From contig OZ116707.1 of NCBI GenBank assembly GCA_964199315.1, positions 30,752,001 to 30,816,000 of the forward strand: a stretch of 64,000 bases of DNA. The letters run 5' to 3'. The notes under the pieces were generated by a model, which saw only the letters and a program-made list of their open reading frames with translations, did not search any database and was not told the DNA's origin. Of this stretch, positions 15,100 through 34,517 are shown piece after piece (position 1 is the first letter of the stretch; each line of letters begins with the position of its first letter). Source of the DNA: Orbicella franksi. Its lineage: Eukaryota. The position numbers and the translations under genes were made by a program.

Positions 15100-16682
15100 T
15101 TAAAGCTCGGTAGTATCTTCGGTCAAAGAAAATCGCTTCAAGAACAAACCATTAGGTAATGAAACTTTTAGAGAACCTGTTACTAACTGATCTGTGCCGC
15201 CTGATGTGGACTCTGAAGGAGAGTTACTTAGTACCATGCCATCAACATCACCATCGTAATCTGCAGGCTGGAGCTCCGGACTATCTCTACCTTTTTCGTA
15301 ATCACTTCGGCGGAGGACAACAGGTGAATTATTGTCGTCCTTCTCGTCGTCCTCCTCGTCGTCCTCGTCAGAGTCCGGCGGTGGCGGAGGAGGTCCTCTG
15401 GGGGGAGGAGGAAAGAACGCCTCGTGATCCATGTCATCAAGTTCATCTGAATCTCTGTCGTTCATGGCCGCCATTCGCGCGGCAGCGTAACCAAAATTGA
15501 TGAAGCTAGAAACACCGTGAGAGATGCTGTCATTCTCTTCCAATGAACTATTGTCTTCCTCTGCTGGTATGTGAATTATAACCTCTTGAGCTTCCTGTAT
15601 CAATTGAAATATGGCAAAGTAAGTTACCCGTACCGCGTGATGTTGGATAGCCACGCAGTCTTTACTTCAAAAGCAAGGATTTCTTATAAAGTCGAAGCAA
15701 GTCGGCCTTTTTCAGCTTGACACTTAGGCTTCAGTAAATTTCTCTAATGCATGTTAATAAGTCACACTAGCAAGCAGAACGTAATTGTCACGTGACTCGC
15801 TTAGCAGCTTAAACAGGAAAGGAGTGGGCACCACTGATTTATTCACTGAAGATGTTTATACTCTAATTATTGAGATACAAATCGTTGGAAAAGGAAACTT
15901 TGATCTTTCCCATTAACAGCGAAAACTTCTCGAATCATTTAGCTCAATGATAGTGCTCAGTTATTTATAAAACAACGTTTTTATGTTTACGGAGGACCTG
16001 CCTTCCCTTTACCGGTTATTTAAAAGTTTAGCTACTACATTCTTTGGTTAATGCCGTATTTAAAATTACACATATTTATATTTATGTTTTGTCAATAGTT
16101 ACATTTTATAACTTGGTAGTGTCAAATTTAAGATCTCCCGGATCAAACATCATTTGACGACCTTCAGTGCATGTTGAACCATTCTGTTAAAATTTCAAAA
16201 AGCAAAAACCTTCATCCATCTTTATTTATTCACTTCTTAAACAGATTACTGAGATAATTGTTAAACTCTTGGCCGTTAGCTTTGAAAATCTATAAAGAGT
16301 TTTCGGCGAAGGTGTAAAATAAGGTCAGTGTCATATTATAGAAAAAACTGTAGTTTTATATCGGATCAGGTTTAACACATGGAATTTTCATAAGAATTAC
16401 AACCTTAAATGATCTAAATGGTACCTGACGCGGCGGAAATTCTAACTACGTCTCATTCAGCATTATTTACAATAATCCGCCATCATGTTCTCGGATCTAA
16501 ACAAAGTCGTAATAACACCATCTTTGCTTATCCAGCAATAAACATTTAAGCTCACTTTTTGCGATATCCTTTCTGGGAGTTACATTAGAAGTAATTTTGT
16601 TGCACAACAAGAACTGCCCTTATAAACAGGCGAGTGCCGCAATAATAATAATAATAATAATAATGATAAAAATAATGATAAA

Positions 16683-16715
<33 letters not shown>

Positions 16716-19700
16716 TTTATTACCGTGTCAGTTTTACTAGTTTTTACCAATAAAAACTAATTGGGGACACCTCTCTACATTACTCCATAAAAGGGTGAGT
16801 GCTTACCTGTGCAGAATCTACATGGTCTGACGTCACGGCACTTTGAACAGGGTCAATGCTGAGGGAATAAAAGAAGGCGTTTCTAAATTGAAATTTCTAC
16901 TGATTTATACATAAAGATTGCTAAAGAATATTTATAACTCCATGCAGCCGTCAATTTACTCTTGGGAGAGTTATTGGCATTTGTCGAGGATGAGATATGA
17001 GGTTTTTAACCCAAAGTTGTGTCTATCATACAACTGTTGTATAACCTGAATGGAGGGTAATAATAGACTTTCAGTCTTGAATTAGTTCTTATCAACTGTG
17101 GCACAGAGGACCTAAGTACAGATCAAACACAGGGAGGTCTGTACTCAAGAGCGAGGTAAAGATTCTCCCGTACGGAGTTCTTTCAATAACATTTTTATTA
17201 CATGACTAAACCAGAATTAAATTAAGTAAACGCGCAGAAAGCCGGTATCCGATTGGCTCTCGCTGTCAACATGGTTGCGAATGAAGATGAAAAATTTGGA
17301 CATAAGACGGTCAGGCCAAATGCTTTTGTATTTTTCGTTTATAACTTTCTCACGGTTACTGTAACAACTAGACCGGTCTAGAGGCTGTTTAAATCGAAAT
17401 AAAACTGGCGGCTGCCTGTTATTACTTACAAGAAGGGTTTGTCATTAAAAGTCACTTTTGGTTTTCTCTTTTTCTTGAAAGGACTTTGACCTCTCCGTTT
17501 TCTCCTGAAAGAAACGCACAAAAAAACTTTAGAGTGAATTTAGTTCTAAATCATTACTAATGTTACAAAATGCGTTTGAGGCAGTAGAGAGAATTTTCAT
17601 ACTGTTGAGAAAAATTCGTACGAGATGTAAACAATGGCGAACATTTCGATTAGGAGAAAAATACTTCAACAGCTCCTGATCTGCACCACTTTAAAACCTC
17701 GTAGAACTAGCATTGCATTTTATGTTGTTTCAATTCACGCTACAACCGGCTCCACTTAACGCTGTATTGTAATTTCAGTGCGTGGGTTAAGTGATCCTGT
17801 ACCCTTTTAAATGCCTTTATATTTTTGCGAGGGGGGAAGATAAGACTGCATGAAATGCCTGTTTTCTGTACCATTTTGGACCATTTTAGACTATTTTGGA
17901 TCAGTAACCGAATGAGCACTCTTTCACTAAAAAATTTACGGGGATTTTCAACTTAGAAGGGACTGCATGGTTTTGGAAGTTGGTAAACCCGGGCCGTAGA
18001 ACAAGTACAAATATTCTGTGTTACGCTCGTTTTTCATGTTTGTTATTAACACTGGGCAACAGGAAGATATAATTTTTCATCACGTTATGCATGGTTAATA
18101 ATTGAAAAACACTCACATGATCAATATAATTATCATAATTATTGCTCCAACCCCGATAATTACACCAAGACAAATCATTGCTCCAACCACAGCGGATAAC
18201 TCGTTCTCAGTCCCCTTTCGAGCCTCAGGAGATGACGGTCCGTCGGGGAGCTGGTACCATTGGATATTAAACTGTTTGTAAGTACTATCCAATAGTTCCT
18301 TATTGTCTGACAAAGAACTAAAAATAACAAAGATGTTATGATTTTAAATCTGCAAATGTAACAATCGTTATTGCAATTGCTGCAGGAGTGGTGCGATTCA
18401 GTTTAATGTCATCGGAACCATAGTTGACGTGGCTTCGGTTTTGATTCAGTTATTGATTTCAACAAGATTTATTTCTGGGCGCCAGTTTCAAGAAATTTCT
18501 CTTCAACGGGGTTTCTTTGGTCTCATGGCCGAACATTTTTTTTCATCGTATGATGTCATGTAAGGATGCACTTTATCTACGACACCGATAACTAAAAACA
18601 TCATGAGCAAGCACTTCTGTTGTTTTTAACAACAGGTCTTACTATAAAACGTTTGTTACTTTGTACCTTATAACTTCAGTGGCTGGCATCACTTGCTTAT
18701 CTTTCACCACGTGAAAAGTCACCACAGTCCTGCAACACAACAAGGCACTAGGATCAGGTTCCCTCGTTCATTTTATGAGCAGCTTTCGTAGAATGAAGGT
18801 TTAAAAGCACATTACTTTTGAAGTTGGAACAAGATAAACAACACCAACAAATTGATCGGTCTCCTAATCTTTACACTTATATATCATCAAGTGTCGAGTG
18901 TTGTCCGATACATACATATTTTGTTTTTGCTCTCTTCTATTTCTTTGGTTAATAACTTAAATACATTCCATACACACTTACATACTTACTTTACAAAATT
19001 AAATTATTTACACCACTCACATTGCAATACTCGATTTACAGTACACTATTTACAGTGTTGTCCAATATAATTTGGTAGTACTTACGCGTTTTCGCCATTT
19101 TCTTGCTGTAGATATTTGATAAACGCTTTTCCTCCAGATATGGTTTCAAGCATCCTACCAATAAATTAAAATGTAATAAAATGCATACATTTTAAAAGCA
19201 TTTGAAAACATATAATGATAATAATTTGCATGGTGAGGTAATAATAAATAGGTGAATACTTCAGGATATAAGTACGCGATATGGGTTTCAAAGTGTTCTC
19301 GACTCAAAACAATGTTCAGAATTTCCGTTTTCTTAAATCGAGAGAATTCTATTAAAACTGCGCCTCATTTCACACCTAAGAAACTGCTGTCGGTGTTTTG
19401 TTATCTCTTCTGGTATCACTCCTGCCTTTATGAGAATAGAATCTTTATCGCGCAGGACGAAGACCTGAGGAAACAAAACAAACAAGTCTTCAAGCCAACC
19501 GCCAAAGTTATTACAAAAAAACAAAATATCTTAATTGACCACTCCCCCAATGGAGCTTTTCAGGCAAATGAATCTAGACTACGAGTAGTCCCTCTTTCGC
19601 TTAGTCCGTCGCGCGTGACGCGAAAGAAAACCGCGGGAAAAAAATGGCCGCGTCACAGGCGCGCACTTCTCGCCCGTAAAATCGCTTACAATACGATTAC

Positions 19701-22700
19701 TTACAAAATGCAGTCCACGGTATCTAAGGGTCTGTTTGCTGGAGGGCAAAAGATAGCCCGGGTTTACAAGCAAAATTTCACAAGCAGAGTAACCTTACAA
19801 ACCGGGACAACTTGATGCACGGTTACACTCAAAGAGAGTGAAAACAATCAGAAAGTTAACCCGGGTAGGCGGGTTAACTCTACCTGGAGTGTTTGCAAGG
19901 GAAAAAGTTAACCCCCCCTGCCAGGGTAACCCGCTTACCCGGGTAACCCTAGCTGCCTTGTAAACACGACGAAGAAGAAAACAGGAAATGTGTGAGTGCT
20001 AGGGTAACCCTCTCTCCTTGAATACAGGCCCTAACAAGCCGTGTACTATGTTTACAGAAGACACTTACATCCACAGTAGCGTTGGTACTTGGTTCTTGCC
20101 CGCCCTCTGAAGCACTGACCTCCAAAGTGAACTTTGACCCATCCTTATCAGCCAACGAGGCTGCTACTCTCACGTGACCCGTATATGGCTCGACATGAAA
20201 CAGTCCCGCTCCATTACCACTGACGAGTTTATAGAATATGACTGAGTCAGAGCCATCATGACTGGCCTGGAAAAATGATGTTCACAATTTACATTCATGT
20301 TTCTCTAATGACATATGTAATAGCACATAAGGACCTAGACTTGCATATACAACTCCCCCAGATAATTTTTTAACCCAGTATCTCCCAGTATACGCGCAAA
20401 AAAAAAACAGAATGGTGGTAAGTACGTCGTCGAGTTGTAATGGCTATGTTATGTTGTCATAAAGTTTTGATTTGATTTGATTTGATAACCTGAGACAATA
20501 ACAACAAAACTAACCTTTACAGTTGTCACCAACGAATAATAAGTCGTTTCTTTGTACACTCCTGGTAAATAATAACACAAAATTGTGCAAGGTAAGAGTC
20601 TGTATCAACGGGAAGTTGCAAGGTATTTTTTACTTGTTTATTCATTTATTTACATATCTGATTAAACTTCGTTCTATCTTCACCGCCCTATGGTTTCCAG
20701 TCCTCTCGCGTGGCTGGTAATTGAGCTTAGCCTCAATGGTTTCCGGTTTTGTGGAAACAATGCTGTTAAATCATTTGTGACACAACGCCTTTCAATTCCA
20801 AAGAGCTTCATCCTCATAGCCGCTATGTACTGATCATCTTTTTGAACTTTTTCACTCAACTAGTTGAAAGAATGTGATAATCATATGTACAGGAAAACGT
20901 TTTCTGCGAGAGCAGCTGCTGTTTGCTTAGTTTTGATATCGATCAAATTAATCTTACCTGCTATGTACGATCGTGGCGAGAAAACATTGACAACAACGAA
21001 ACCAACATCATAGCGAGGATGAAGTCCATCGTCTTGTGCTTTTACTACAAGCTAAACAACAGATACTGATGAGTAAATATCACAGTAATGAAATAAGAAA
21101 ATCGTTATTTACCCACGGTGTCCATTTCACATTTCATATTGTACTCTTCTACAAATTTAAAGCCTGCAAATTACCAAGTAAATTATGATAGAAACTTATT
21201 CAACTGACAGGGTTATCTACAGCCACAGTGATAGCTGCCATGGGTAATATTTTAGCACAAAAAAATACTGTATTGCCAGAAGGGACCTCTCGAGAGAATT
21301 ACATGATTTTTGAAATACTGAGCTGTTCTACTGCCTCACGGCGATAACGAGTTTGAATAGAATAGTTTGCCAGTCTGCACAACATGAGCTATCCAAACTC
21401 GAGAACCATAATAAGGGAAAAGAAGAAGGATTCGAAGTCACCATGGCGAAATGAGAGATATTGAAGTCAACAATATGAAACAGTCTAGTTAAACATAATT
21501 TGGTTTAACAAGTAAAAAAAAAAAACATTCCTTCTGGTAGAATGATACAAGACTAATAGATCCCAAATGAGTCTAACGAATAATAAAAACACTCTGTCCC
21601 AATACCATGTATTCTTCAGGGTCAGCGTCATTGTCAAATGTCCCGGATGTGGTAATGACGCCTGTGACACTATCAATAGAGAACTTGTTGTCGGCGCCTT
21701 GAACAAGGTGATAAGTAACTTGCGCATTTCTGGCTGCATCGGCATCTGAGGCTTGACACCGAGCAACAAACGAACCAGAACCGGCACCCTGAAATAGAAC
21801 GTACGAAGATCTGATACGTTAAACCATTTATAGCGAATTAGTCATCTTTTAGGCTGTACTTCCTGTGACATTCTACCAAATAATACCAATAACACTAGAT
21901 TAATCCTTTCAACCTCGATGTAAAGTGTAAATTCTCCTTACTGTTGTAAGAGATTTCTTTGAAAGTCAGTTCTGAGAATTGAATGCTTTAAATTAAAACA
22001 ATTGTCCATGTTCTCCTCGCCCGTGTGCCTTGTAATATATTAATATTTTAAGCCGAACTAAACTATGATCAAAACAACTTGTTACCTCAAAAACAGAAGC
22101 TCGAATGATCCTCGCTTGAAGAGCTGGAGAGTTATCGTTAGCATCTATCACGTGAATCGTGACGTTACTAAATGCTTTGCGTGGAGGCTGTCCCATATCA
22201 GAAGCTGATATGTTGAGTGTATGCTGAACTGCAGACTCGTAATCAAGTGGTTTCACCAAAGATAACGCTCCGGTTTGGTTATTCAAAGCAAAGATTCCTG
22301 ATAAAGAACACAAATAAACAGACACGCTCGAGTTGCGTCCTTCTAAAACTGGTGCATTATGCATTTGACAGCAAAATGTATGCAGTAAGACCTATGATAA
22401 TTCAGCAGTTAATTAGAAAGATGATTTTAAAATATTGATCCGCGTAAAGTGGCTTCCTGACCAAAGCGCACTTTATAGCAGCAACAGCTTTTTTTTTTTC
22501 AATTCCTTTTTACTTTTTTTGGTGCTATGTCTTTCGACCGTGTGGGGGCAACCTAATCATAAGTGGTTGATATGTCCAATGGTCGATATGTTTACAAACA
22601 CACACACACAGACAAGGATGCACAGAAAAAAACAATTTTCATTTAAAGCAGTTTGAGAACTGCAAAGTATAACTGGTCAACGCGACTCTCAATAAGTGTG

Positions 22701-25700
22701 TCTATTGATAAGGAATAGGAAAAAAACAGCTGCTAGTCGCTGTTAAAAACAGCATCTGAAAGTCACACATACCTTGTTCATTGCCTGCTATAATCTCGTA
22801 CATCACTAAACCGTTCTGACCAGCATCTGGGTCACGTGCCGCTACTGTGAAAACAACAGTCCCTGGTGATGTGTCTTCTCCTACACTTACCGACACCTCG
22901 TTCTCGAATTTTGGAGTGTTATCGTTTGCGTCCAAAACTTTGATAATTATCTGAAGAATTAGAAAAAAGAGAAAAAGGATTCTCATCTTTTTACATTCAC
23001 ATGATACTAAGATGGAAGCTTTTCTTACATTCCGCATAAATATACCCTCCAACAACAAAGGCAACATCCAATTTTCGCCATCAAAAGCACACGGCAATAT
23101 CATGTCCAGAAATGCACGAAATTGACAGATTTGAGGAAATTTCGTCAAACTGAGTGAATGGAGTTCATGGATTTGACGATTTTGCCGAACTTTAGTCAAA
23201 TTTGTCAAAGCCAAATCAACTTGGCGTATTTGACGGTTTTGACGATTTTGTCACTTGGCTGTGGCCAGGAGCCCGTTTCTCGAAAGCCCCGGTTTCGGGC
23301 CCTAAAAGCCATTTTTAGTCAATCAGCATTTAAAGACATAGAGGTGTATACGCCTGAAACTTATTGTATGAGGGGAGCTCTGTTCGTAGTAAGAATACGT
23401 GGAAAAAACAGCTCTGTAGTCACAAGGTTTGAGATTTTGCTACGGCTTTTCGGGTGCGAAAACTTTTCGGGGCCTTCGAGAAACGGGCTGTGGCCAAAAA
23501 GGACTTAAAAAGGCATACTAGGGCAATGATTCGATTCTGTTTTTTTTTTTTGTTTGTTTGTTTTTTAATGTCACGCCAAGCTAGCAGACGGTAAAAAAAA
23601 GTCCCTCACCATTGCAAATCCTTTGTTTTTTCCATTGCTCAGTAACTCTACAACCAAGGTATACTGATACTGTTCTTCTCTGTCCAAAGCTTGAGGGCCG
23701 ACTTTGAGCTCTTTTGACGTTCCATTGATGAAAAACTTGTCACCCTCACCGCCTTGATGAATTTGGAATACAGGGTTTGATACATTGAAATATTGTTCCA
23801 GAGGCTACAAATAAAAAACACAAACAATGATGTTAAAGACATTTTACTTTACACGCGAAGCTGGTTTTTAATTCTTGAATAAAAGAGGAACTGACGTACC
23901 TTTAAGTCAAACACTGTTGTGTTAGCTTCGTTTTCCAGCACCACAGTCTCAAATGTTCGATTTGGCATTGCACCCACATTTATCATGACCAGAGCAAATG
24001 CAACAGGATGATTGGTTGATTTTGCCTGGGAGAAGAAATCAAATTACAATTTTAATTAAGAGGTAAGCACTCTGAGACTTATTCATTTCTTTAGAGACGT
24101 TTATACAAAACGGAATTTATTTGTCGGTAATGATTGTTCGTGCCAAACATGCATGTCTTTCTATGGTTTATTCCTGCACGAAAGGGAGAACACATGATGC
24201 ACTTTTCTAAAAGAGGGATCTATACTTGTCTCATTCCAACAAAACCAACTTTAAGCTATTTTCTTGACTAAGAATGGTAAGTAACGCAAGCACTCCATGC
24301 GTCCTGTCGCTATAGCTGATTCATCATATTGCTTGGACTACTTACCGTTACTATGATGGGATAGGAGTCTCGAGTAAGATTACTGTTTACTGTTATTGAG
24401 CCTGTTATGTTGTTGATCGTGAATAACTTGTCAGGATCACTCTCTGCAATATAACAAAGCAAACTCTGGTCTTCAAACATTCTGACCTAAAATGCTAGTC
24501 TTGCCAGGGGTCCTGTGGTTCTCCCTAGTAGAGGGTCTGGTTTGGGTAATCGGCTGTAATCACAGCTATATATCAGTCAAGTTTCAGCCATTTCCCAGAT
24601 TTAGAGAGTTTAAGCATGACGTTTACAGCAGACGGCAAACGGCAAAGATTACCTCTGAATTTGTGTTCTTTTCTTCTAGTCCTTTACTAAATCACACAAA
24701 AATAGAAAAATCGCCCCTACTATTCACCTCAAATACAAATATTTTCACGCTAACTGTATAGACAGCTGAAGACAGACGGCAAAAACTTCATTTTTGCCAT
24801 TTGACGTAACGTCATGCTTAATCTCTCTATTAGTAAATTCTTCAAACCTCTGATCTCAGTTGCCATTGGATAATGTTGCTAACACTTAAAACGGTTGACA
24901 AATTTTCAGTTAACAGTTACATTCAGCTCCCGTGCTGCTCCCGTGCAGTTCGGGACATGATGGTATCTCCTGCTAGCTTGGGATGTGAAAATCTGACATA
25001 TGGAGGATATTTTAAGCTCGGTAATGAAATGTGAAGGTGAATTAATCAACATGACACGAGCGTGGGACAAAGAAAAATTCTGAGTCCCCGACAGGAATCA
25101 AACCCATGACCTCCCGAACACTGGGCGGGCGCTCTATCCACTGAGCTACGAGAACTCATGGAGAGTAAGGTCATTTAGCTGAGTTCATATATGACAGGTG
25201 TCCTGCATACTGCTAGGATCAACGCTATCGAATTCATCGTGAGCAGTGATAAGTTAATAAAGATGGTGAATTTTAAGCTCGGTAATGAAATGTGAAGGTG
25301 AATTAATCAACATGACGCGAGCGTCATGGGAGGTCATGGGTTCGATTCCTGTCGGGGACTCAGAATTTTTTTTGTCCCACGCTCGTGTCATGTTGATTAA
25401 TTCACGTTCACATATGGAGGGCAGGTTTTAAGATGAATCCCTCTCCTTCCTCGCTATACTCATGTTACGCGGAGGTGTTTGTTTTTCTACGATATTGAAT
25501 TTCCTGAGCTGCTAGTCCAGGATTCCTTTCTCCTCATGCAGAATGCCAGTCAAAATACAGACCAATAAATACAAATTTCCCTTTTTGCCATGGTGACGCT
25601 TGCTAATTATGAGTGCATTTCGTAAACAAGAGGAAAAGTCATGTGATATAGTTGTGCATTATGATGTTGTCTACCNNNNNNNNNNNNNNNNNNNNNNNNN

Positions 25701-28700
25701 NNNNNNNNNNNNNNNNNNNNNNNNNNNNNNNNNNNNNNNNNNNNNNNNNNNNNNNNNNNNNNNNNNNNNNNNNNNNNNNNNNNNNNNNNNNNNNNNNNNN
25801 NNNNNNNNNNNNNNNNNNNNNNNNACCAACCTGGATATATTGCATAGGAGACTGGAGCCTCCACCGAGTCTTGGTCTTCAGCGAGCACTTTAACGATTTC
25901 ACGGCCCTTAGTTGTCAGAAGAAAAAAGGCGTTTCACAAAAACGAAATTATCATGAGAGTACCTGCATATCTAGAAAATACCAAGCGTTATCTGGGATTG
26001 CAGCTAACAAGGGGAAACTTTTCCACATATTTGTTACGTCGAGTGCCCGGGCAAGAATAAAGATATCGTGGCACATCAATGAAGTTATTTAATGTCTGTG
26101 TGAAAGACATGATCAGTACAGAGTTGGTTCTTGTGATATGTGTGAGTTGACAAAACCAAAAAGAAATTTAGGTTTTAGAATAACTAGACACTCTCCTTCC
26201 TTTTTTGGAATAACAGGTTACTCCGGTCCTGTTTGTTTTGAGTTCTTTTTACGCCATCTCCAGAAATAAAGCACGTGGGTGAGACAGAATTGTATTCGAG
26301 TACAAACCTATGTAGCTCATCAAGTCTTACAGTTGTGTTTAGTTAAATGATTTAAGTAAACAGCAATCCTTCTTACTTGTGGCGTATCGACTTCAATCAA
26401 CGCTTCATATAAATACTGAGAGAACTTTGGTGGAAGATCGTCAGCATCTAACAGTCCTATGGTCACCACTGTCCAGTTTTGGTTGCCCGTGGGTGCACCA
26501 TGTTCATCCTGCAGAAGATTAGGTCAAAGTATCAAGAGAAGAATTTTGTAAGGAATGACAAACCTCAAGATGATGGATGAGGTTAACTTTCCAGTATTCA
26601 GTCGTCAAATACAAATCTCTTATTGAATTAGATATTTATGAAAAGCACGGCACAACTTAAAAGAAGTCCGAACTGTGCTTAAGAATGCGAGTACGTCATT
26701 TTCAAGTCTGTCTGTATTGTAATCCATTGTAAACCAAAATAATTACAGGTATTCATCCTCACTTCTAAACGGCTTTCTGTTACTCGTCGAATATTGTTTT
26801 ACAGCGCACGGCTTTTTTATTTATACCTCAGGGGTGAGTGGAAGATAACAGTCAAGCAAAGACAGAAAGCTAGGTTAGACTATGCACCTAACGCAAGATA
26901 TGTTCTTACCGTTGCCGTTATATTAAGATAATAATACGAACTTGATCCCTCGAAATCAAGTGGCTTTTTCAAAGTTATCTTCCCACTTAGACCAGCAATT
27001 TCAAAAACTCCTTCCTGAAAATGAAATAAGTAAATAAACGCATTACCTACTGGTTCCATTCGCTGCCTTGCATAAAGAAACCGATATTTTAACGGTAGTC
27101 CACGATGGCATCCTCTCAATTTTTGTGTATTTCTTTAGCAGGTGGTATAGTTACTTTACCAACAGTAAAGAAGTTTGTAAACGGTTAACCTTGGAATCTT
27201 ACAAGTCTGATTAAAATTTAATTGCCTTTATGTTAATCTTCGGCGACTATCCGTCGGATGAAACCGTTTCAACGATGAAAGGAGATGATAGGCAGTTACA
27301 AAAAGAACGCTGTATTCAAAGGTGAGTTGAGCAACTGAACCAGTTTTCCTGTCCCCGTTAGTTTCACACTGAATGCAGTGGGATTAATTCCAAAAAGAAT
27401 GAACTTGAAAGTATGAAGAGGGTGCTTTAGTAGTAAAATTTAGTTTTACTAAGAAGCAGCCTATGAAATCGCTGGGAGAAATTGAAGAAATTATATGACA
27501 TGTCAGAATGCAACGTTAGAGATCATTGGACTAGAATAATTAAATCACGAGATACTGAAACACACAGTGTATTATCTTTCGCCCACTTACTTTGTCTCCT
27601 CCTGCGATTTTGAAGTACACTGTATTGTAATGATGATCTGAGCTGTCTTTATCAGAAGCTGATACCTGGAACACCACCTCGCCAACTTCTGTGTTCTGAT
27701 TTTAATAAAAGTTACAACACAAATGTAAAACAATAGTGGTGGCATGCAAGCCTGTCGTGCTAGTCTTGGGTAATACCTGCTGTGAGCAGTCTGTGAAGTG
27801 TGTCACGATTATAAGCTCTCTTGCTCGTATTGCCTGATAATCATTTACCAGCTCAATATAGAGTAGTGAAGTCCGTGAACAGAAACTCAGGTCCTATTTA
27901 TATGGTCTCGGTTACCCGACACAACCCTCCCCCGAGGCAACTTTATCGAGCGTTTATATATATGTGAAAACGTAGTCCCTGTAGGTTGATCCCGCATGAT
28001 TATTCATAACCCTTATTGATACGAATTTCTGCTTCAAATCCTAAACCTAGGCATTGCGTGATACTTGCCACACCGAGAGTTTTCCCGTTAGGCGAGCCAA
28101 ATTAAGTGTTTATATGAAGAAAAGTTGCCCCGCTTGCCAGAGTTACCCTACCTGCCGAGCCGAGACAACTCACCCACTCGAGTTGTCTCGCCCACGAGAC
28201 GGTTTCGCGATCCTCGTGTAAACGGTTTGCTGAATTTTGCAAAGAAATAAGCTAAAAGTTACCTTGGGCAGGTTAACTCGGGGGGAGGGTTGTCTCGGGT
28301 ACCGGAGGCCTCAAAGTGTCGCATTTGAGGATGAACATGTCAGAGGTGCTGGAGGAAGACAATTAGTTCCTGTACTGGTTAGCCAACAGCTCCTAAGTTA
28401 TTAATTGAAACTTCTCGACTCTGCTGGGATTGCTTTACATTTTTTGGACAACTCAGCAAATGTTTTCACTGACTGAAGTGTTTCCCTAGTTAACACTGTA
28501 AGTAATTGAAAGGTTGGTTTTTATTTCGTTTTTACCTCAGAAATGTTGACTTGATATGGCAAGTTTTCAAACTGTGGATAGTTATCATTCAAGTCCAGCA
28601 CAGTGCAAAAGATAATTTTTGTACCCTGTCGAAGAGAGCAAAGGAGAAATATTTAGAACAGTTGAAGCCTATGATGGCATTTTCTTCAGATGGTGGCATA

Positions 28701-29566
28701 GTTCTTCTAAATGTGCTCTCGAAACAGCTCAACAAATTGCAGCATTCACTTTACTGTGCAAGGAGAATTCCGGCAACTAATCCGGCATAGTCAACGGAAC
28801 ATGATTTTTAGCCCGTGCTCAGATCCTGAAAACGATGAAATAAATGGCCGGATAAACCAGGAAATGAAACGAGAATGTACGTCCCTTGCCCTAAAAAAGT
28901 ACATTAAAATTAATTTCAGAAATGCCTCTAACCTTATTAGATTCGTCGCTTTTAGAAGCAACCACGTCAAACCGAATCGACGACGACGTTCCCTGAAAAA
29001 ATATATATATAATTTAGGGTTTAAACAAGACGAGAAAACACCGTGTTTTAGTCAGTGCTTCTGCGATCAACTAAAGGATCAATTAACTGACCGTGCGCAG
29101 ATGGACGGAATTTACTCTGAATGCTTGTTTGTTAAAATCACCAACGTTTTGGGTGAACCGAACAAGCCCTGAAACGGTTTTAACAATTTCAACGCTTGTT
29201 CGGATTGAAAAGCTCTATGATGATAGTGTTTGATTACCTCTCTGTCCAAAGTTCTTGCAACAGTAATAACGCCAGTCGTGCTGTTTATTTCAAACCATCC
29301 TTTGTCATTTGTAAGGGAATAAGTGATTTGAGCCCCAGTATTTGTCACGGCCACAGCTTGCACACTTGCAATGAACGTTCCTGAGGAAGAACGATGTGGA
29401 AACTTATCAATCACAGGCATGATAGCTCTTAATACGCGCTATGAGTTGGGAAAACGGTTGACATGCGATGTTCGGAAGGGTTCAGAGCAATCAGTGGTTC
29501 AGTGAACATCAGTTGGGAAATAACAGTGCCTTTTCTCTATATATTTAGATTTCTCTGCCTTAACAT

Positions 29567-29615
<49 letters not shown>

Positions 29616-32600
29616 CATTGTTTATTATATATATATATATAATAAACAATGGTAGCAAGACTTCAATTCATCGTTTATTGCGACAACGCTGTTTCGTATG
29701 GTCAAAGGATGACCACACTCATCAGGCAATATCAACGAATGACCGTTAAATTTCACAAACTGGCAATTAAAAGCTAACTTTAGGTTGCTATGAGATATAA
29801 AAACAGTTGCTATGATATGGAAAAACAGATGCTATATAACATTGAAAAATCTCGTGTTGCTAAAAGATTGCGTTACTTGCTCACAAAGTTCTTGAGTAGG
29901 TATCTGTTTCTGTGGGGGCACGCACTTGCTAGTTCGTTTCGCTTGTTCAAAGTACACAAACTCTTCTTACAGATGATCACGAATTTTTCAAAAAGACATA
30001 AATTACATTTGTTAGTAATGTTGCTATAAGGTCTGCACTGCTTAATGATTCTCCACTTGATGGTAAAAGGTTTGTTGTTGTCTTTGAGTGTCCAAATATG
30101 TTTAGATAGCTCAGTTTCGTTTCTCTTGTTTTGGTGTCGAAAGGATGCTGTGTGATTCCTGTAGCGCTCTTTAAAATTTGTGGCGAGGCCCACGTATGAT
30201 TCTGATGACGTTTGTGTTGTGATTGTGGCTTGGTAAACTACATTTTGTGTGAGGCATTTTCCGTCCAGCGGGCATTGATCCTTTTTTCTGCAGTTGCATT
30301 CTTTGGCGTTTGTTTGTGTTTGCGACTGGTGGTAATCTGATAGTAGTGCTTTGTTGTGTGACGAGATGATACTCTTCATGTTAGGCATGCAGGAGTAGCT
30401 GAGCTTCAGTGTGTGCTTGTTGAAGATCTTGTGTAGGGGGTGTCCGTTAGGGAAGCATCTGTCAATGATGTTTAGGAACTTCCTTCCCAGGTTAGTTTTC
30501 ACGTTAGCATTCCATGGGGGGTTGTACCATACGATTTTTCTTTGGCGATTTCTGTTGCGCTTTGGCTGTGGTTTATACGTGAGCTTGTGATTGTAGCCGC
30601 TCTCGTCAAGCGCTTTCTGGTACGGCGGAATCGCTTCGTCGAAAACTTTCTGGCTAGATGAGATGCTGGTCAGTCGTTTGTTGATGTTTTCTGGAATGTT
30701 CTTCAGTAGTGCGGGTGGGTGATTACTTTGTCGGTGAACGTAGAGGATTTTGTTGTTGGGTTTCATGAAGGGTTTGTAAGATCCACTTGTAAGGTCTAGG
30801 GTTACGTCTAGGAAGTTTATAGTTTTTTTGTTTGCTTTGATGGTGATTTTGAGGCCATTTGACTTGAAAATTTCACTGACTTCTTGTTTCGTTTTCGTTT
30901 TCGTTTTAGAAGAAATTTTCAAGTCAAATGGCCTCAAAATCACCATCAAAGCAAACAAAAAAACTATAAACTTCCTAGACGTAACCCTAGACCTTACAAG
31001 TGGATCTTACAAACCCTTCATGAAACCCAACAACAAAATCCTCTACGTTCACCGACAAAGTAATCACCCACCCGCACTACTGAAGAACATTCCAGAAAAC
31101 ATCAACAAACGACTGACCAGCATCTCATCTAGCCAGAAAGTTTTCGACGAAGCGATTCCGCCGTACCAGAAAGCGCTTGACGAGAGCGGCTACAATCACA
31201 AGCTCACGTATAAACCACAGCCAAAGCGCAACAGAAATCGCCAAAGAAAAATCGTATGGTACAACCCCCCATGGAATGCTAACGTGAAAACTAACCTGGG
31301 AAGGAAGTTCCTAAACATCATTGACAGATGCTTCCCTAACGGACACCCCCTACACAAGATCTTCAACAAGCACACACTGAAGCTCAGCTACTCCTGCATG
31401 CCTAACATGAAGAGTATCATCTCGTCACACAACAAAGCACTACTATCAGATTACCACCAGTCGCAAACACAAACAAACGCCAAAGAATGCAACTGCAGAA
31501 AAAAGGATCAATGCCCGCTGGACGGAAAATGCCTCACACAAAATGTAGTTTACCAAGCCACAATCACAACACAAACGTCATCAGAATCATACGTGGGCCT
31601 CGCCACAAATTTTAAAGAGCGCTACAGGAATCACACAGCATCCTTTCGACACCAAAACAAGAGAAACGAAACTGAGCTATCTAAACATATTTGGACACTC
31701 AAAGACAACAACAAACCTTTTACCATCAAGTGGAGAATCATTAAGCAGTGCAGACCTTATAGCAACATTACTAACAAATGTAATTTATGTCTTTTTGAAA
31801 AATTCGTGATCATCTGTAAGAAGAGTTTGTGTACTTTGAACAAGCGAAACGAACTAGCAAGTGCGTGCCCCCACAGAAACAGATACCTACTCAAGAACTT
31901 TGTGAGCAAGTAACGCAATCTTTTAGCAACACGAGATTTTTCAATGTTATATAGCATCTGTTTTTCCATATCATAGCAACTGTTTTTATATCTCATAGCA
32001 ACCTAAAGTTAGCTTTTAATTGCCAGTTTGTGAAATTTAACGGTCATTCGTTGATATTGCCTGATGAGTGTGGTCATCCTTTGACCATACGAAACAGCGT
32101 TGTCGCAATAAACGATGAATTGAAGTCTTGCTACCATTGTTTATTATCTACACTGCTCCTCTCAGAGTCGAGCGCTCTATAAATTTATTCTGTTCAAGTT
32201 CAAGAAGTATATATATAGTTAGTTATATATATATATATCAGTATATAACAATGAAGATGACGACGAAAACGTTGTGTCAATCGTCTGTCATTTAACTATG
32301 CAAAGTTTAGAGGCACTCGTTGACAATCATGGCCCTCTAATTTGGATGTGAGTTATTTAACTGACTTTCTTTTAGCGATCCGGCAAATTAACAAAACAAC
32401 GAAAATGGCCACAGTTTGCGGTTGTTAAGTGAGAGATCCATAAAGAGAAAAATCGCCGGTTTGCTGACTTTTTGGTAGAAGCGGTCCTAAAATCACAACT
32501 CAGTCGACGAAAGAAGAACACGTTTCCAAGACTCAAGGGCAAATTTTGAAAACGGGTGCCTAAATTTTTCTATTTGTGATCAAAATTTCGCGCTTGTGCT

Positions 32601-34517
32601 TCCGTAACTCATGATAGCAACCCTTTGGTAGCTTGCGAGGACTAGAATTAGTAATTTTTAACACTGAATCTTTTAGGTTTCTTCAGTTTGATGTAAATAT
32701 CATTGTATTTTCGCCATGTTGACGATAGAGACCCTCTGCTCAAGGTTACTGTGCTTTATACCAAAAGTCCTTTTGATGTTTTTTCAGTTTCCTTACCAGG
32801 AGGACTAGACTCATTCACTCTTGGCTCCAGCGGTAAATTTGGGCTTGGAAAGTAAACACCTGCCAAAAAAAAAGAACAAATTCTACAGACGCGGCGCACA
32901 CTCCATAATTAGATATTTAGTTGACTCCCGCTAGCCTTTATATTAAAGGAAATAAAGAAAGATTCAAAATTATCTCGGGAGATAATAGGGAATAATTCGG
33001 TATGTGTTTCAATCAGGTTTATTTCAGAGAAACACGAAAACTGGGGCGATACTTTGCTAATATAGAGACAGATCTGAAAGGAATAAAACAAATCAAAAGA
33101 AGACAGCAGAATTAGAATAGCTATATAGTTTGGTGGGTTACTGCAGTACATAGTTGTAAAGAGGTACTTTGTTGTAGAAACAGTTAATTACAAGACAGTA
33201 ATTTTGGGGAACTTTGTCTGATTAACTTTTGACTAATGTGGCTCGAATTATGATCGTATTTTACCCCGTACATAATTTAAAAATTAATTAACTAATAATA
33301 GTATTAATAGTTCTCTTAGAAACCGAATCACAGTATCCAACCTGAACTGAACTTTATGTAATTTGAACTAATGTAAAAATTATACACTCTCGGCCAGGGT
33401 GATCACAGACGGTTTCAGGTAATTTTTGGTCTTACTGTGGCTTGTAGTCTAACACTGTATTTAGAATAACTTGGAGGAAAGAAGAGTGGGTGTAATCATC
33501 AACCAATTGACACGTTTTAAAATAACATTACTTGCAGTCAGAACATCCAAGCGACTTGTTAATTTTTTTTTTTTTTTTTTCACATAAACAGATAGTGAAC
33601 TTTCAAATTAGTTTAACAAAAGTTTCCCCCCTTGTCTTAACACAGAACCGAACTGATCTTTCCAACCAGGTCCTGGTTAACTGATCTACAGGCAAGACTT
33701 GAGAAGCTACAGCCAGGATAAATTTTAAATAATAACTGCTGACACTCCGTTCAAGCATTGGACTGTAAAGTTGAATTATTAGCACAAAAATGCATGGTTG
33801 TTCTCGAAATCAATCCCTTCAGTCTCCTACGAAACAAAAATCTCAAAATGTTGGAGGACATTGGAAAACTATACACTTTTTCCATCCACCACCGACCACT
33901 CCGTGAAAATATAATATGTAAGTGGAAAATATGAACTTACAAGGAAATACTGGAATTTTCTAACCCGCAGGAAGTCAATTACCTCGAGGGATGCAAATAA
34001 TAAAACAAAACATGTCGAAGTGAAGGCTAAAAGACAATTTAAGGATTAAGATCTCGTAATTCAATCAATGAACAGAATACAATGTCAATTAAAGCCTGTG
34101 AAGGCACTACCAAAGTTTGGCATATCTGATGTCTTCTGCAGTGGTTTATGTTTGATGATCTTTCTGAAGTGTATACAAACTATATAAACCTAACATATGC
34201 TGATTAATTACCGCAATCCATAGAAGGGATATAGCATATAGAGCAGTCGCGGTTTGTACTGTTACGAGATAACATCAGTAAGAGTACAATCCATAAAGGT
34301 AACTTTGGCTCAATGTTTTTGTGTTCTCTACTCGGAATGCAAAGAAAGGAATTCGCGATACGCACTTACTCAGTGTTGTATTCAGTACTTGGAGACCAGA
34401 GCACATACATGGGCACACATACCCAGAATACATAAGGAATTTATTTGATTTACTTAACTTACCTTCGATCACGCCAGGCTTGAAAGCCGCCAATAAAAAC
34501 ATTAACTGAATTAGCAT
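15100..34517 (-). CDS. CDH23/CDHR2-like cadherin: signal peptide, 7 EC repeats, membrane-adjacent domain, TM, cytoplasmic tail; ~1075 aa
   Basis: 25 GT-AG exons joining in frame (5'->3'): 34517-34463, 32859-32797, 29380-29238, 28992-28933, 28625-28536, 27695-27591, 27014-26910, 26508-26377, 25906-25831, 24443-24346, 24025-23900, 23804-23610, 22950-22773, 22297-22086, 21788-21606, 21051-20958, 20561-20515, 20266-20069, 19464-19376, 19154-19086, 18729-18667, 18317-18117, 17504-17430, 16882-16807, 15594-15100 (3228 nt). LDRE/LDFE/LDYE and DxNDNxP motifs; MAD-like VFVLRDKDSILIK...FLRMLETISG...TVVTFHVVK...DNKELL; TM LSAVVGAMICLGVIIGVGAIIMIIILI; ends EDTTEL*. Confidence 0.92.
16641..16714. repeat. 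(AAT)n microsatellite
   Basis: Seen directly. Confidence 0.95.
19728..20031. mobile_element. PIF/Harbinger-type (Tourist-like) MITE
   Basis: Termini GGGTCTGTTT / ATACAGGCCC flanked by TAA on both sides; internal GGGTAACCC palindromic motifs. Confidence 0.7.
23271..23488. mobile_element. MITE with ~20-bp TIRs
   Basis: GCCCGTTTCTCGAAAGCCCC ... GGGGCCTTCGAGAAACGGGC. Confidence 0.75.
24602..24829. mobile_element. MITE with 20-bp TIRs
   Basis: TAGAGAGTTTAAGCATGACG ... CGTCATGCTTAATCTCTCTA (19/20 match). Confidence 0.8.
25007..25409. mobile_element. tRNA-derived SINE-like element, partially tandem-duplicated with an inverted copy
   Basis: Minus strand has A box TAGCTCAGTGG and B box GGTTTGATTCC; ~46-bp segment repeated directly (~25010 and ~25271); inverted partial copy ~25326-25405; ACATATGGAGG direct repeats at 24996-25006 and 25410-25420. 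Confidence 0.75.
25676..25824. other. Assembly gap (149 N)
   Basis: Run of N in cadherin intron 9. Confidence 1.
27890..28310. mobile_element. Harbinger-like MITE
   Basis: Subterminal inverted repeats TTACCCGACACAACCCTCCCCCGAG / CTCGGGGGGAGGGTTGTCTCGGGTAC; TCA on both flanks. Confidence 0.6.
29570..29611. repeat. (TA)n microsatellite at the left edge of the Penelope-like insertion
   Basis: Seen directly; TA-rich tract also at 32207-32246. Confidence 0.95.
29639..30900 (-). mobile_element. 5'-truncated Penelope-like retroelement (end of RT, thumb, GIY-YIG endonuclease, 3' UTR); left arm of palindrome
   Basis: Open frame KQEVSEIFKSNG...INFLDVTL...YVHRQSNHP...CNCRKKDQCPLDGKC...VVYQA...YVGLAT...KW...CNLCLFEK, stop at 29873. 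Confidence 0.93.
29676..29731 (-). ncRNA. Type I hammerhead ribozyme (left arm)
   Basis: Exact reverse complement of 32055-32110. Confidence 0.85.
30912..32206 (+). mobile_element. 5'-truncated Penelope-like retroelement; right arm of palindrome, extending ~60 bp further 3'
   Basis: Mirror of the left arm (position x maps to 61786-x); same translation to the stop at 31913; followed by a TA-rich tract. Confidence 0.93.
32055..32110 (+). ncRNA. Type I hammerhead ribozyme (right arm)
   Basis: TATTGC-CTGATGA-GTGTGGTCA(TCCTT)TGACCATAC-GAAACAGCGTTGTC-GCAATA: stem I, CUGAUGA core, 9-bp stem II, GAAA, short stem III, GUC cleavage triplet. Confidence 0.88.

Follow-up and report, generated by a model that had tools for sequence, protein, structure and literature searches.

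The window analysed here, 64,000 nucleotides of DNA from the coral Orbicella franksi (contig OZ116707.1, positions 30,752,001 to 30,816,000), carries on its minus strand a real, expressed coral gene for a protein of the cadherin superfamily. The coding sequence, 3135 nt in 24 exons, runs from an ATG at 34517 (window coordinates, as throughout) to a stop codon at 15102-15100 and specifies 1044 aa: a signal peptide (aa 1-19), seven extracellular cadherin (EC) repeats (EC1-EC7, aa 20-720), a membrane-adjacent stretch of about 80 aa that is not an EC repeat (aa 721-800), a short linker, a hydrophobic helix at about aa 813-837 that is the only segment of the protein hydrophobic enough to be transmembrane (TM), and a cytoplasmic tail of 206 aa with EDTTEL at its C-terminus. 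On balance, we consider it probable that the protein is a single-pass, non-classical cadherin-related adhesion receptor whose tail brings in a PDZ scaffold together with an actin regulator of the Ena/VASP type. An original prediction, made from the letters of the DNA alone, had given exactly these start and stop codons, and its seven EC repeats, membrane-adjacent domain (MAD), TM segment and EDTTEL directly before the stop codon are borne out by the 24-exon model and by matches to the Pfam family PF00028, as is its statement that the N-terminus (mature VYFPSP...) lacks an extension of the CDH23 type. It had also called the protein a CDH23/CDHR2-like cadherin with a harmonin-type PDZ motif, and that part fared less well.

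The gene appears in a stop-to-stop translation of the minus strand from 36000 to 14000 as short cadherin-like open segments strung along the strand, the last of which, 188 aa long, ends in SLTEDTTEL. Candidate exon boundaries were then read directly in the DNA. All introns of the resulting model are GT-AG, and their phases agree. Exon pieces from all seven EC repeats match PF00028 (15, 20, 22 and 29-31 bits for exons 6, 7, 10 and 13, the other scores being given in Table 1); those of EC2 and EC3 lie under the gathering score of the family because the domains are divided among exons. A full or nearly full calcium-binding motif (LDRE or of the DxNDN type) stands at four of the linkers between repeats, EC1-2, EC2-3, EC4-5 and EC5-6, and DxNDN is missing from EC3-4 and EC6-7 (sequences in Table 1). 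None of the exon pieces matches EGF or LamG in Pfam, and neither the last exon (164 aa) nor the juxtamembrane exon gives any Pfam match up to an E value of 1, so the catenin-binding Cadherin_C domain of classical cadherins was not found there.

One junction was initially unclosed: the juxtamembrane exon leaves phase 2, and the last exon begins in phase 0. The phase is restored by insertion of a 52-nt exon (16858-16807), which is conserved in the orthologous loci of other coral assemblies. Direct joining of the juxtamembrane exon (ending KPK) to the last exon was rejected, as conservation of VTFND.PF at the protein level extends to distant species and the 52-nt exon repairs the phase.

RNA evidence was drawn from three raw polyA RNA-seq runs (X21, X23 and X24) and a contig set (X10), on 20900-26560. 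It shows the splicing of exons 7-16, and all eight joints match the model exactly. Seven of them (21051/21606, 21787/22085, 22296/22772, 22950/23610, 23804/23900, 24024/24345 and 25905/26376) lie at predicted positions. The eighth spans a gap in the assembly, a run of N at 25824-25676. Exon 9 (25906-25831) ends in AIYP plus one base, with the donor GTTGGT next to it and the run of N following; it leaves phase 1, which is the phase needed by exon 10 (acceptor 24444/24443), and the two joined give a normal EC3 of about 98 aa. The joint 24443-25831, which skips 1387 nt and reads CT..AC on the plus strand, is present in 8 reads of X23, in 16 reads of X24 and in one contig of X10. The boundaries of exons 9 and 10 recur unchanged in L009, a close relative, and in L008, a coral at greater distance, and intron 9 of L009, 938 nt in length, holds no cadherin-like exon. 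Because of the donor, the phase, the RNA joint and the boundaries in the relatives, the gap lies within an intron: the reading frame runs on without a break, and neither an EC repeat nor any other coding sequence is missing. Two acceptors for exon 10 further upstream (giving VRMFEDQ... or SLLCYIA...) were rejected by phase, by domain length and by the RNA joint at 24443.

The same RNA shows some further features of the locus. Two parts of intron 9 (about 24490-24680 and 24870-25435) contain SINE-like (short interspersed element) repeats, with translations such as WIERPPSVREVMG..., at which RNA depth is very high; there are many loose ends there, along with opposite-strand and backward joints, and these signals stem from repeat copies at other places in the genome and do not reflect transcription of the intron itself. 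At 22809 (exon 13, aa 464), part of the reads of X23 and X24 show A>T, which changes L464 to I; three more changes, at 21726, 23658 and 23936, are synonymous. All of these look like differences between alleles or strains rather than editing. One contig of X10 continues from exon 14 into intron 13 (22324-22748), where it departs from the window by 20 differences and several indels. It comes from a divergent allele or strain, as a copy that is either unspliced or derived from DNA.

Orthologues were found through the tail exon in about 25 coral-derived sequences, and three of these are on long contigs, whose loci were taken with their flanks. The L009 locus retains the 24 exons in the same order, with all splice sites preserved and with indels whose lengths are always multiples of 3, and its open reading frame (ORF) of 1049 aa is intact. 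Measured against L009, the ratio of nonsynonymous to synonymous substitution rates (dN/dS) comes to 0.235 for the whole protein; the membrane-adjacent domain has 0.044, and the linker and TM helix have 0. Within the ectodomain, a fast-evolving tip (EC1) is found together with a nearly frozen base (the membrane-adjacent domain, aa 721-800), as far as small numbers allow. In the more distant L005 and L006/L008, the exons from EC2 or EC3 through the tail are recognizable, with 46-78% protein identity. Exons of a GH116 gene lie downstream of the cadherin gene in L006 and L007, as they do in the window, and because of this shared synteny the cadherin loci are orthologous. The tail exon is single-copy in the genome. 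A paralogous cadherin-related gene exists at G000:C13:15705650-15731336 on the plus strand (loci L015-L018), with a MAD-TM exon 39-41% identical, an EC1-like exon and at least five more cadherin exons upstream; because the tail is single-copy, this paralogue has no similar tail. Intron 2 of the window gene holds two identical ORFs of 361 aa, 29873-30958 (minus strand) and 30828-31913 (plus strand), inverted and overlapping. Both contain a GIY-YIG-like motif, which makes the pair a head-to-head palindrome of a Penelope-like element.

An alignment of 25 coral tail sequences, 42-99% identical to the tail of the window, leaves two elements invariant. One is the block FFPPPP-x-GPPP-x-PPDSD (aa 940-956), which has acidic flanks and is present in 25 of 25. 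The other is the C-terminus, F-[S/P]-[L/S]-x-E-x-x-T-x-L, which finishes in T-E-L, in T-D-L or, in a single case, in T-V-L. In the numbering of the tail exon, the positions invariant in the 25 sequences are P62-P65, P68-70, P72-73, S75, D76, F155, E159, T162 and L164. A motif scan returned FPPPP at aa 941, KVTF at aa 854 and TEL at the C-terminus. The juxtamembrane element, K/R-V-T/K-F followed by ND.PF (17447-17458, aa 854-857), is conserved in three coral species, and it fits the RVxF pattern of putative PP1-docking sites, like RRVTF of the delta-1 protocadherins. AlphaFold2, given the alignment, models the tail with a mean pLDDT of 57.7 and a pTM of 0.16, with confidence only in the polyproline block, and the tail is accordingly predicted to be a disordered carrier of short linear motifs.

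The FFPPPP block fits the description of a candidate ligand for EVH1 domains of the Ena/VASP type, a feature absent from the original prediction. The core consensus of class-I ligands is F/L/Y/W-PPPP, usually with acidic flanks, and the FAT1 cadherin uses the motif to recruit Ena/VASP and organize actin (PMC2172355); the coral block agrees in sequence with both core and flanks. Genes with WH1/EVH1 domains are present in the same genome. At the other end of the tail, the chain stops directly after T-E-L, a free C-terminus of the form [S/T]-x-hydrophobic, as expected of class-I PDZ ligands, with T162 and L164 invariant in all 25 tails. The PDZ-binding motif (PBM) that had been predicted is thus upheld as a class-I ligand, but its attribution to harmonin is not, as motifs of the TEL type bind several PDZ proteins. 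The PBM of CDHR2 does bind PDZ2 of USH1C (10.1101/2020.09.06.285171). ITEL of CDH23 binds harmonin but also MAGI-1 and PIST (PMC2967513), and CDHR5, a cadherin of microvillar tips that likewise has a PBM, binds EBP50/E3KARP rather than USH1C (PMC10916864). Because ITEL has several partners and the PBM of CDHR5 uses another scaffold, a PBM is a weak mark of family.

Nor does the rest of the tail point to a family. Searched against 1.84 billion representative sequences, it gave seven matches, all to short coral-like exon ORFs or to low-complexity sequence, with no full-length homologue among them, and a profile of the 25 tails run against the PDB found no homologue, only chance matches to polyproline. 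Homology to the tails of CDH23 and CDHR2 (Cr-2) was seen in neither search.

The grouping Cr-2 is based on similarity at the EC1 tip (10.1101/460097). PDB sequences were searched with pieces from EC1, EC5-6 and EC7, and the best single stretches were compared, because chains of many repeats inflate full-sequence scores. The matches are mixed: CELSR1, clustered and non-clustered (delta) protocadherins, PCDH15, FAT4, DCHS1, CDH23 and classical cadherins. For EC5-6 and EC7, two of the three pieces, the best single stretch belongs to CELSR1, with protocadherins next. Cdhr2 was matched once and weakly, in an internal EC (5cyx, residues 254-287, E 3.7e-4). The EC1 piece (a weak test at only 47 aa) matches internal ECs of PCDH15, CDH23, CELSR1 and FAT4, and the entries containing EC1-2 of CDH23 (2wcp and others) were matched in EC2, not at the tip; similarity to the tip of CDH23 or CDHR2 did not appear in the search with the EC1 piece. 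Membership in Cr-2, judged by sequence, fails on both of the comparisons that could be run, tip similarity and tail homology. The proposed likeness to CDH23 and CDHR2 is not supported, given EC pieces without preference, an EC1 that matches internal repeats and a tail without a homologue beyond coral-like sequences.

The original prediction had also likened the membrane-adjacent domain to that of CDH23, quoting three strings, ILRDDQRVKIV, FIHLLSNITG and DENKEQL. Neither these strings nor their sub-strings occur in any of the three minus-strand frames of the window. The region actually reads VFVLRDKDSILIK ... SDNKELL, which is only loosely similar; the claimed resemblance to CDH23 had rested on strings that the window does not contain. 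The exon pieces of the domain, a weak probe at just 29, 20 and 66 aa, recovered no MAD and no family from the PDB or Pfam, only matches at the level of chance. Two DNA patterns spanning the exon junctions of the spliced MAD sequence found nothing in metagenome contigs. The TM exon, used as a protein query, matched only exon ORFs that were unspliced, and it gave no usable match in the ESM Atlas. The MAD-TM exon has been seen only in coral-like sequences. Nor would a genuine MAD be particular to CDH23 or CDHR2, because the paper defining MAD12 predicts such domains in CDH23, in PCDH24/CDHR2 and also in all FATs and all CELSRs (10.1101/460097).

How might such a protein work? As an adhesion receptor with a motif-bearing tail, it would use its ectodomain of seven ECs to make calcium-dependent contacts between membranes or protrusions, with the compact, strongly constrained domain of about 80 aa sitting at the membrane. 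The disordered tail might then act through four elements, namely the RVxF-like K/R-V-T/K-F in the basic juxtamembrane stretch, the FFPPPP block, a Ser/Thr-rich acidic patch and the terminal T-[E/D]-L, and so could tie the contact to a PDZ scaffold while bringing in a factor for actin elongation. The structure of the gene, the splicing of exons 7-16, its expression, its conservation and the invariant motifs are observed; adhesion itself, the partners of the tail, how the membrane-adjacent domain folds and the type of cell concerned are things that we infer. Several observations weigh against this account of the gene or narrow it. The signal peptide is short. Exons 1-6 and 17-24 rest on the logic of phases and on the conservation of exons and splice sites, without RNA joints. 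Exonic reads are present in X23 and X24 and lacking in X21, one of the three polyA runs, so expression is restricted or condition-dependent. EC1 is without DxD calcium ligands and evolves fast, which bears on the mode of adhesion; its dN/dS against L009 (aa 20-124), 0.67, is the highest in the protein, albeit a noisy value from only 105 codons. Finally, FPPPP and T-x-L consist of few residues; that they are invariant speaks for a function, but motifs of this kind would not by themselves name the partner.

What the original prediction proposed is a short member of the CDH23/CDHR2 group (Cr-2), with DTTEL bound by PDZ2 of harmonin, that links stereovilli or microvilli (on hair bundles, cnidocytes or collar-type cells) in a cnidarian complex like those of Usher proteins or of the intermicrovillar adhesion complex (IMAC). 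Several points favour it. Like CDH23 and PCDH15, the coral protein is a non-classical cadherin encoded by many exons, with some calcium-free linkers; in all three, as also in CDHR2 (10.1101/460097), a non-EC domain separates the last EC from the TM segment, and in the coral protein this is the most constrained part of the ectodomain. The invariant T-E-L equals the last three residues of ITEL, the class-I PBM of CDH23 (PMC2967513), a motif of the EVH1 type would suit an actin protrusion, and Nematostella has a harmonin homologue and a CDH23-like protein that ends in YDETTL, thus in DETTL as its last five residues (PMC3899209). CDHR2 (PCDH24) and CDHR5 resemble the coral protein in being cadherin-related, short to medium in length and equipped with a PBM at the C-terminus; a MAD10 is predicted in CDHR2, whose PBM binds USH1C PDZ2 (10.1101/460097; 10.1101/2020.09.06.285171), and CDHR5 combines its PBM with a proline-rich tail (PMC10916864). 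Against these stand the differences in size and sequence: CDH23 has 27 ECs, PCDH15 11 and CDHR2 9, compared with 7 in the coral cadherin; the membrane-adjacent domain of CDH23 and PCDH15 is about 100 aa long, compared with about 80 aa; and the coral cadherin has no N-terminal extension, no specific EC1 similarity to those two and no detectable tail homology with them. EC1, EC5-6 and EC7 carry no signal specific to CDH23 or CDHR2, the quoted MAD strings are absent and the MAD pieces match nothing in the PDB or Pfam, MADs are predicted in FAT and CELSR as well (10.1101/460097), the tail has no homology to any non-coral protein, PBMs of the TEL type are promiscuous (PMC2967513), and the scaffold cannot be read off from a PBM (PMC10916864). 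Membership of an Usher-like complex by descent from Cr-2 is for these reasons improbable.

Delta-1 protocadherins have seven ECs and the motif RRVTF, the C-terminus of FAT1 is a PDZ ligand, and CDHR5 has four ECs and a mucin domain. In another reading, the protein would be a shortened offshoot of FAT/CELSR or protocadherin-like cadherins, serving cell-cell contact and polarity signalling in epithelia or neurons and not the linking of protrusions. The seven ECs and the RVTF-like juxtamembrane motif do recall the delta-1 protocadherins, and the best single-stretch PDB matches of EC5-6 and EC7 are to CELSR1 and then to protocadherins, although piecewise PDB scores do not resolve these families. 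Secondary Pfam matches to Cadherin_FAT4_N (EC1) and Cadherin_CELSR2_9th (EC7) recur in the exons of the L006 orthologue, but all are weak and below cut-offs. An EVH1 motif together with a C-terminal PDZ ligand recalls FAT1, of which the EVH1 part (F/L/Y/W-PPPP in the tail) is confirmed by the literature (PMC2172355), and a MAD is predicted after the last EC of FAT proteins (10.1101/460097). FAT1, however, has 34 ECs plus EGF and LamG, its MAD is not beside the membrane, and no homology between the tails is detectable; FAT cadherins generally have about 32-34 ECs and then EGF and LamG, whereas the coral protein has seven ECs and no match to either. It also lacks the seven-transmembrane (7TM), EGF and LamG parts of CELSR/Flamingo, and vertebrate protocadherins carry nothing MAD-like in their ectodomains. 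We regard such an offshoot as unlikely. Far less probable still is that the tail motifs have no binding role and that the protein functions through its ectodomain only, as a surface molecule specific to the lineage (in the recognition of self/non-self or of symbionts, for example). EC1 is the fastest-evolving part, as in recognition molecules, and the tail and MAD-TM exon occur only in coral-like sequences, but the invariance of FFPPPP..GPPP..PPDSD and F..E..T.L-COOH across 25 sequences that are otherwise 42-99% identical is hard to explain without partners. A more specific reading, improbable at present, would make the protein a lineage-specific compact link cadherin with a true MAD, its tail coupling a harmonin-like PDZ scaffold and Ena/VASP at actin-based protrusions (stereovilli of hair-bundle cells or of cells that support cnidocytes, or microvillar collars). 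It would then be a counterpart, streamlined independently, of the Usher complex and the intermicrovillar adhesion complex.

Table 1. Exons of the coral cadherin gene and the assembly gap, in window coordinates, with the evidence for each.
Feature	Position	Strand	Evidence
Exon 1: start codon, signal peptide (aa 1-19)	34463..34517	-	Conserved, including ATG, in L009
Exon 2: EC1 start (mature VYFPSP...)	32797..32859	-	Model, conservation
Exon 3: EC1 core	29238..29380	-	Pfam Cadherin, 42 bits
Exon 4: EC1	28933..28992	-	Model, conservation
Exon 5: EC1 end (DLNDNYPQF), EC2 start	28536..28625	-	Model
Exon 6: EC2	27591..27695	-	Pfam, model
Exon 7: EC2	26910..27014	-	Pfam; loose RNA-read end at 26509 fits exon-7 end
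Exon 8: EC2 end, EC3 start	26377..26508	-	RNA joint 25905/26376
Exon 9: EC3; donor GTTGGT (25830-25825) adjoins gap	25831..25906	-	RNA joints on both sides; same boundary in L009, L008
Assembly gap (N), entirely within intron 9	25676..25824	.	RNA joint 24443-25831 skips gap
Exon 10: EC3	24346..24443	-	RNA joints; Pfam
Exon 11: EC3 end (calcium-free linker INVGAMPNRTF), EC4 start	23900..24025	-	RNA joints
Exon 12: EC4	23610..23804	-	RNA joints; Pfam, 31 bits
Exon 13: EC4 end, EC5 start	22773..22950	-	RNA joints; Pfam
Exon 14: EC5, EC6 start	22086..22297	-	RNA joints; Pfam, 41 bits
Exon 15: EC6	21606..21788	-	RNA joints; Pfam, 39 bits
Exon 16: EC6 end (calcium-free linker VVNVFSPRSY)	20958..21051	-	RNA joint 21051/21606
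Exon 17: EC7 start	20515..20561	-	Conserved in L006, L007
Exon 18: EC7	20069..20266	-	Pfam Cadherin, 34 bits
Exon 19 (M1): membrane-adjacent domain, first part	19376..19464	-	Conserved in L005, L006, L007
Exon 20 (M2): membrane-adjacent domain, middle	18667..18729	-	Model, conservation
Exon 21: membrane-adjacent domain end, linker, predicted TM helix (about 18193-18119)	18117..18317	-	Model, conservation
Exon 22: basic juxtamembrane segment, RVxF-like KVTF (17458-17447)	17430..17504	-	Model, conservation, motif scan
Exon 23: 52-nt cytoplasmic exon	16807..16858	-	Cross-species conservation
Exon 24: acidic proline-rich tail, stop; FFPPPP..GPPP..PPDSD (15417-15367), TTEL (15114-15103)	15100..15594	-	ORF, tail alignment, motif scan

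The window thus supplies a well-supported gene model for an uncharacterized cadherin-related protein, found only in coral-like sequences, and adds a member to the cadherin-related proteins. Its length of 1044 aa makes expression and localization far easier than for the CDH23-like giant studied in sea anemones, with its 44 predicted repeats. If the tail truly docks both a PDZ scaffold and Ena/VASP, then the protein would offer a tractable entry to the question of how cnidarians tie links at the cell surface to actin.

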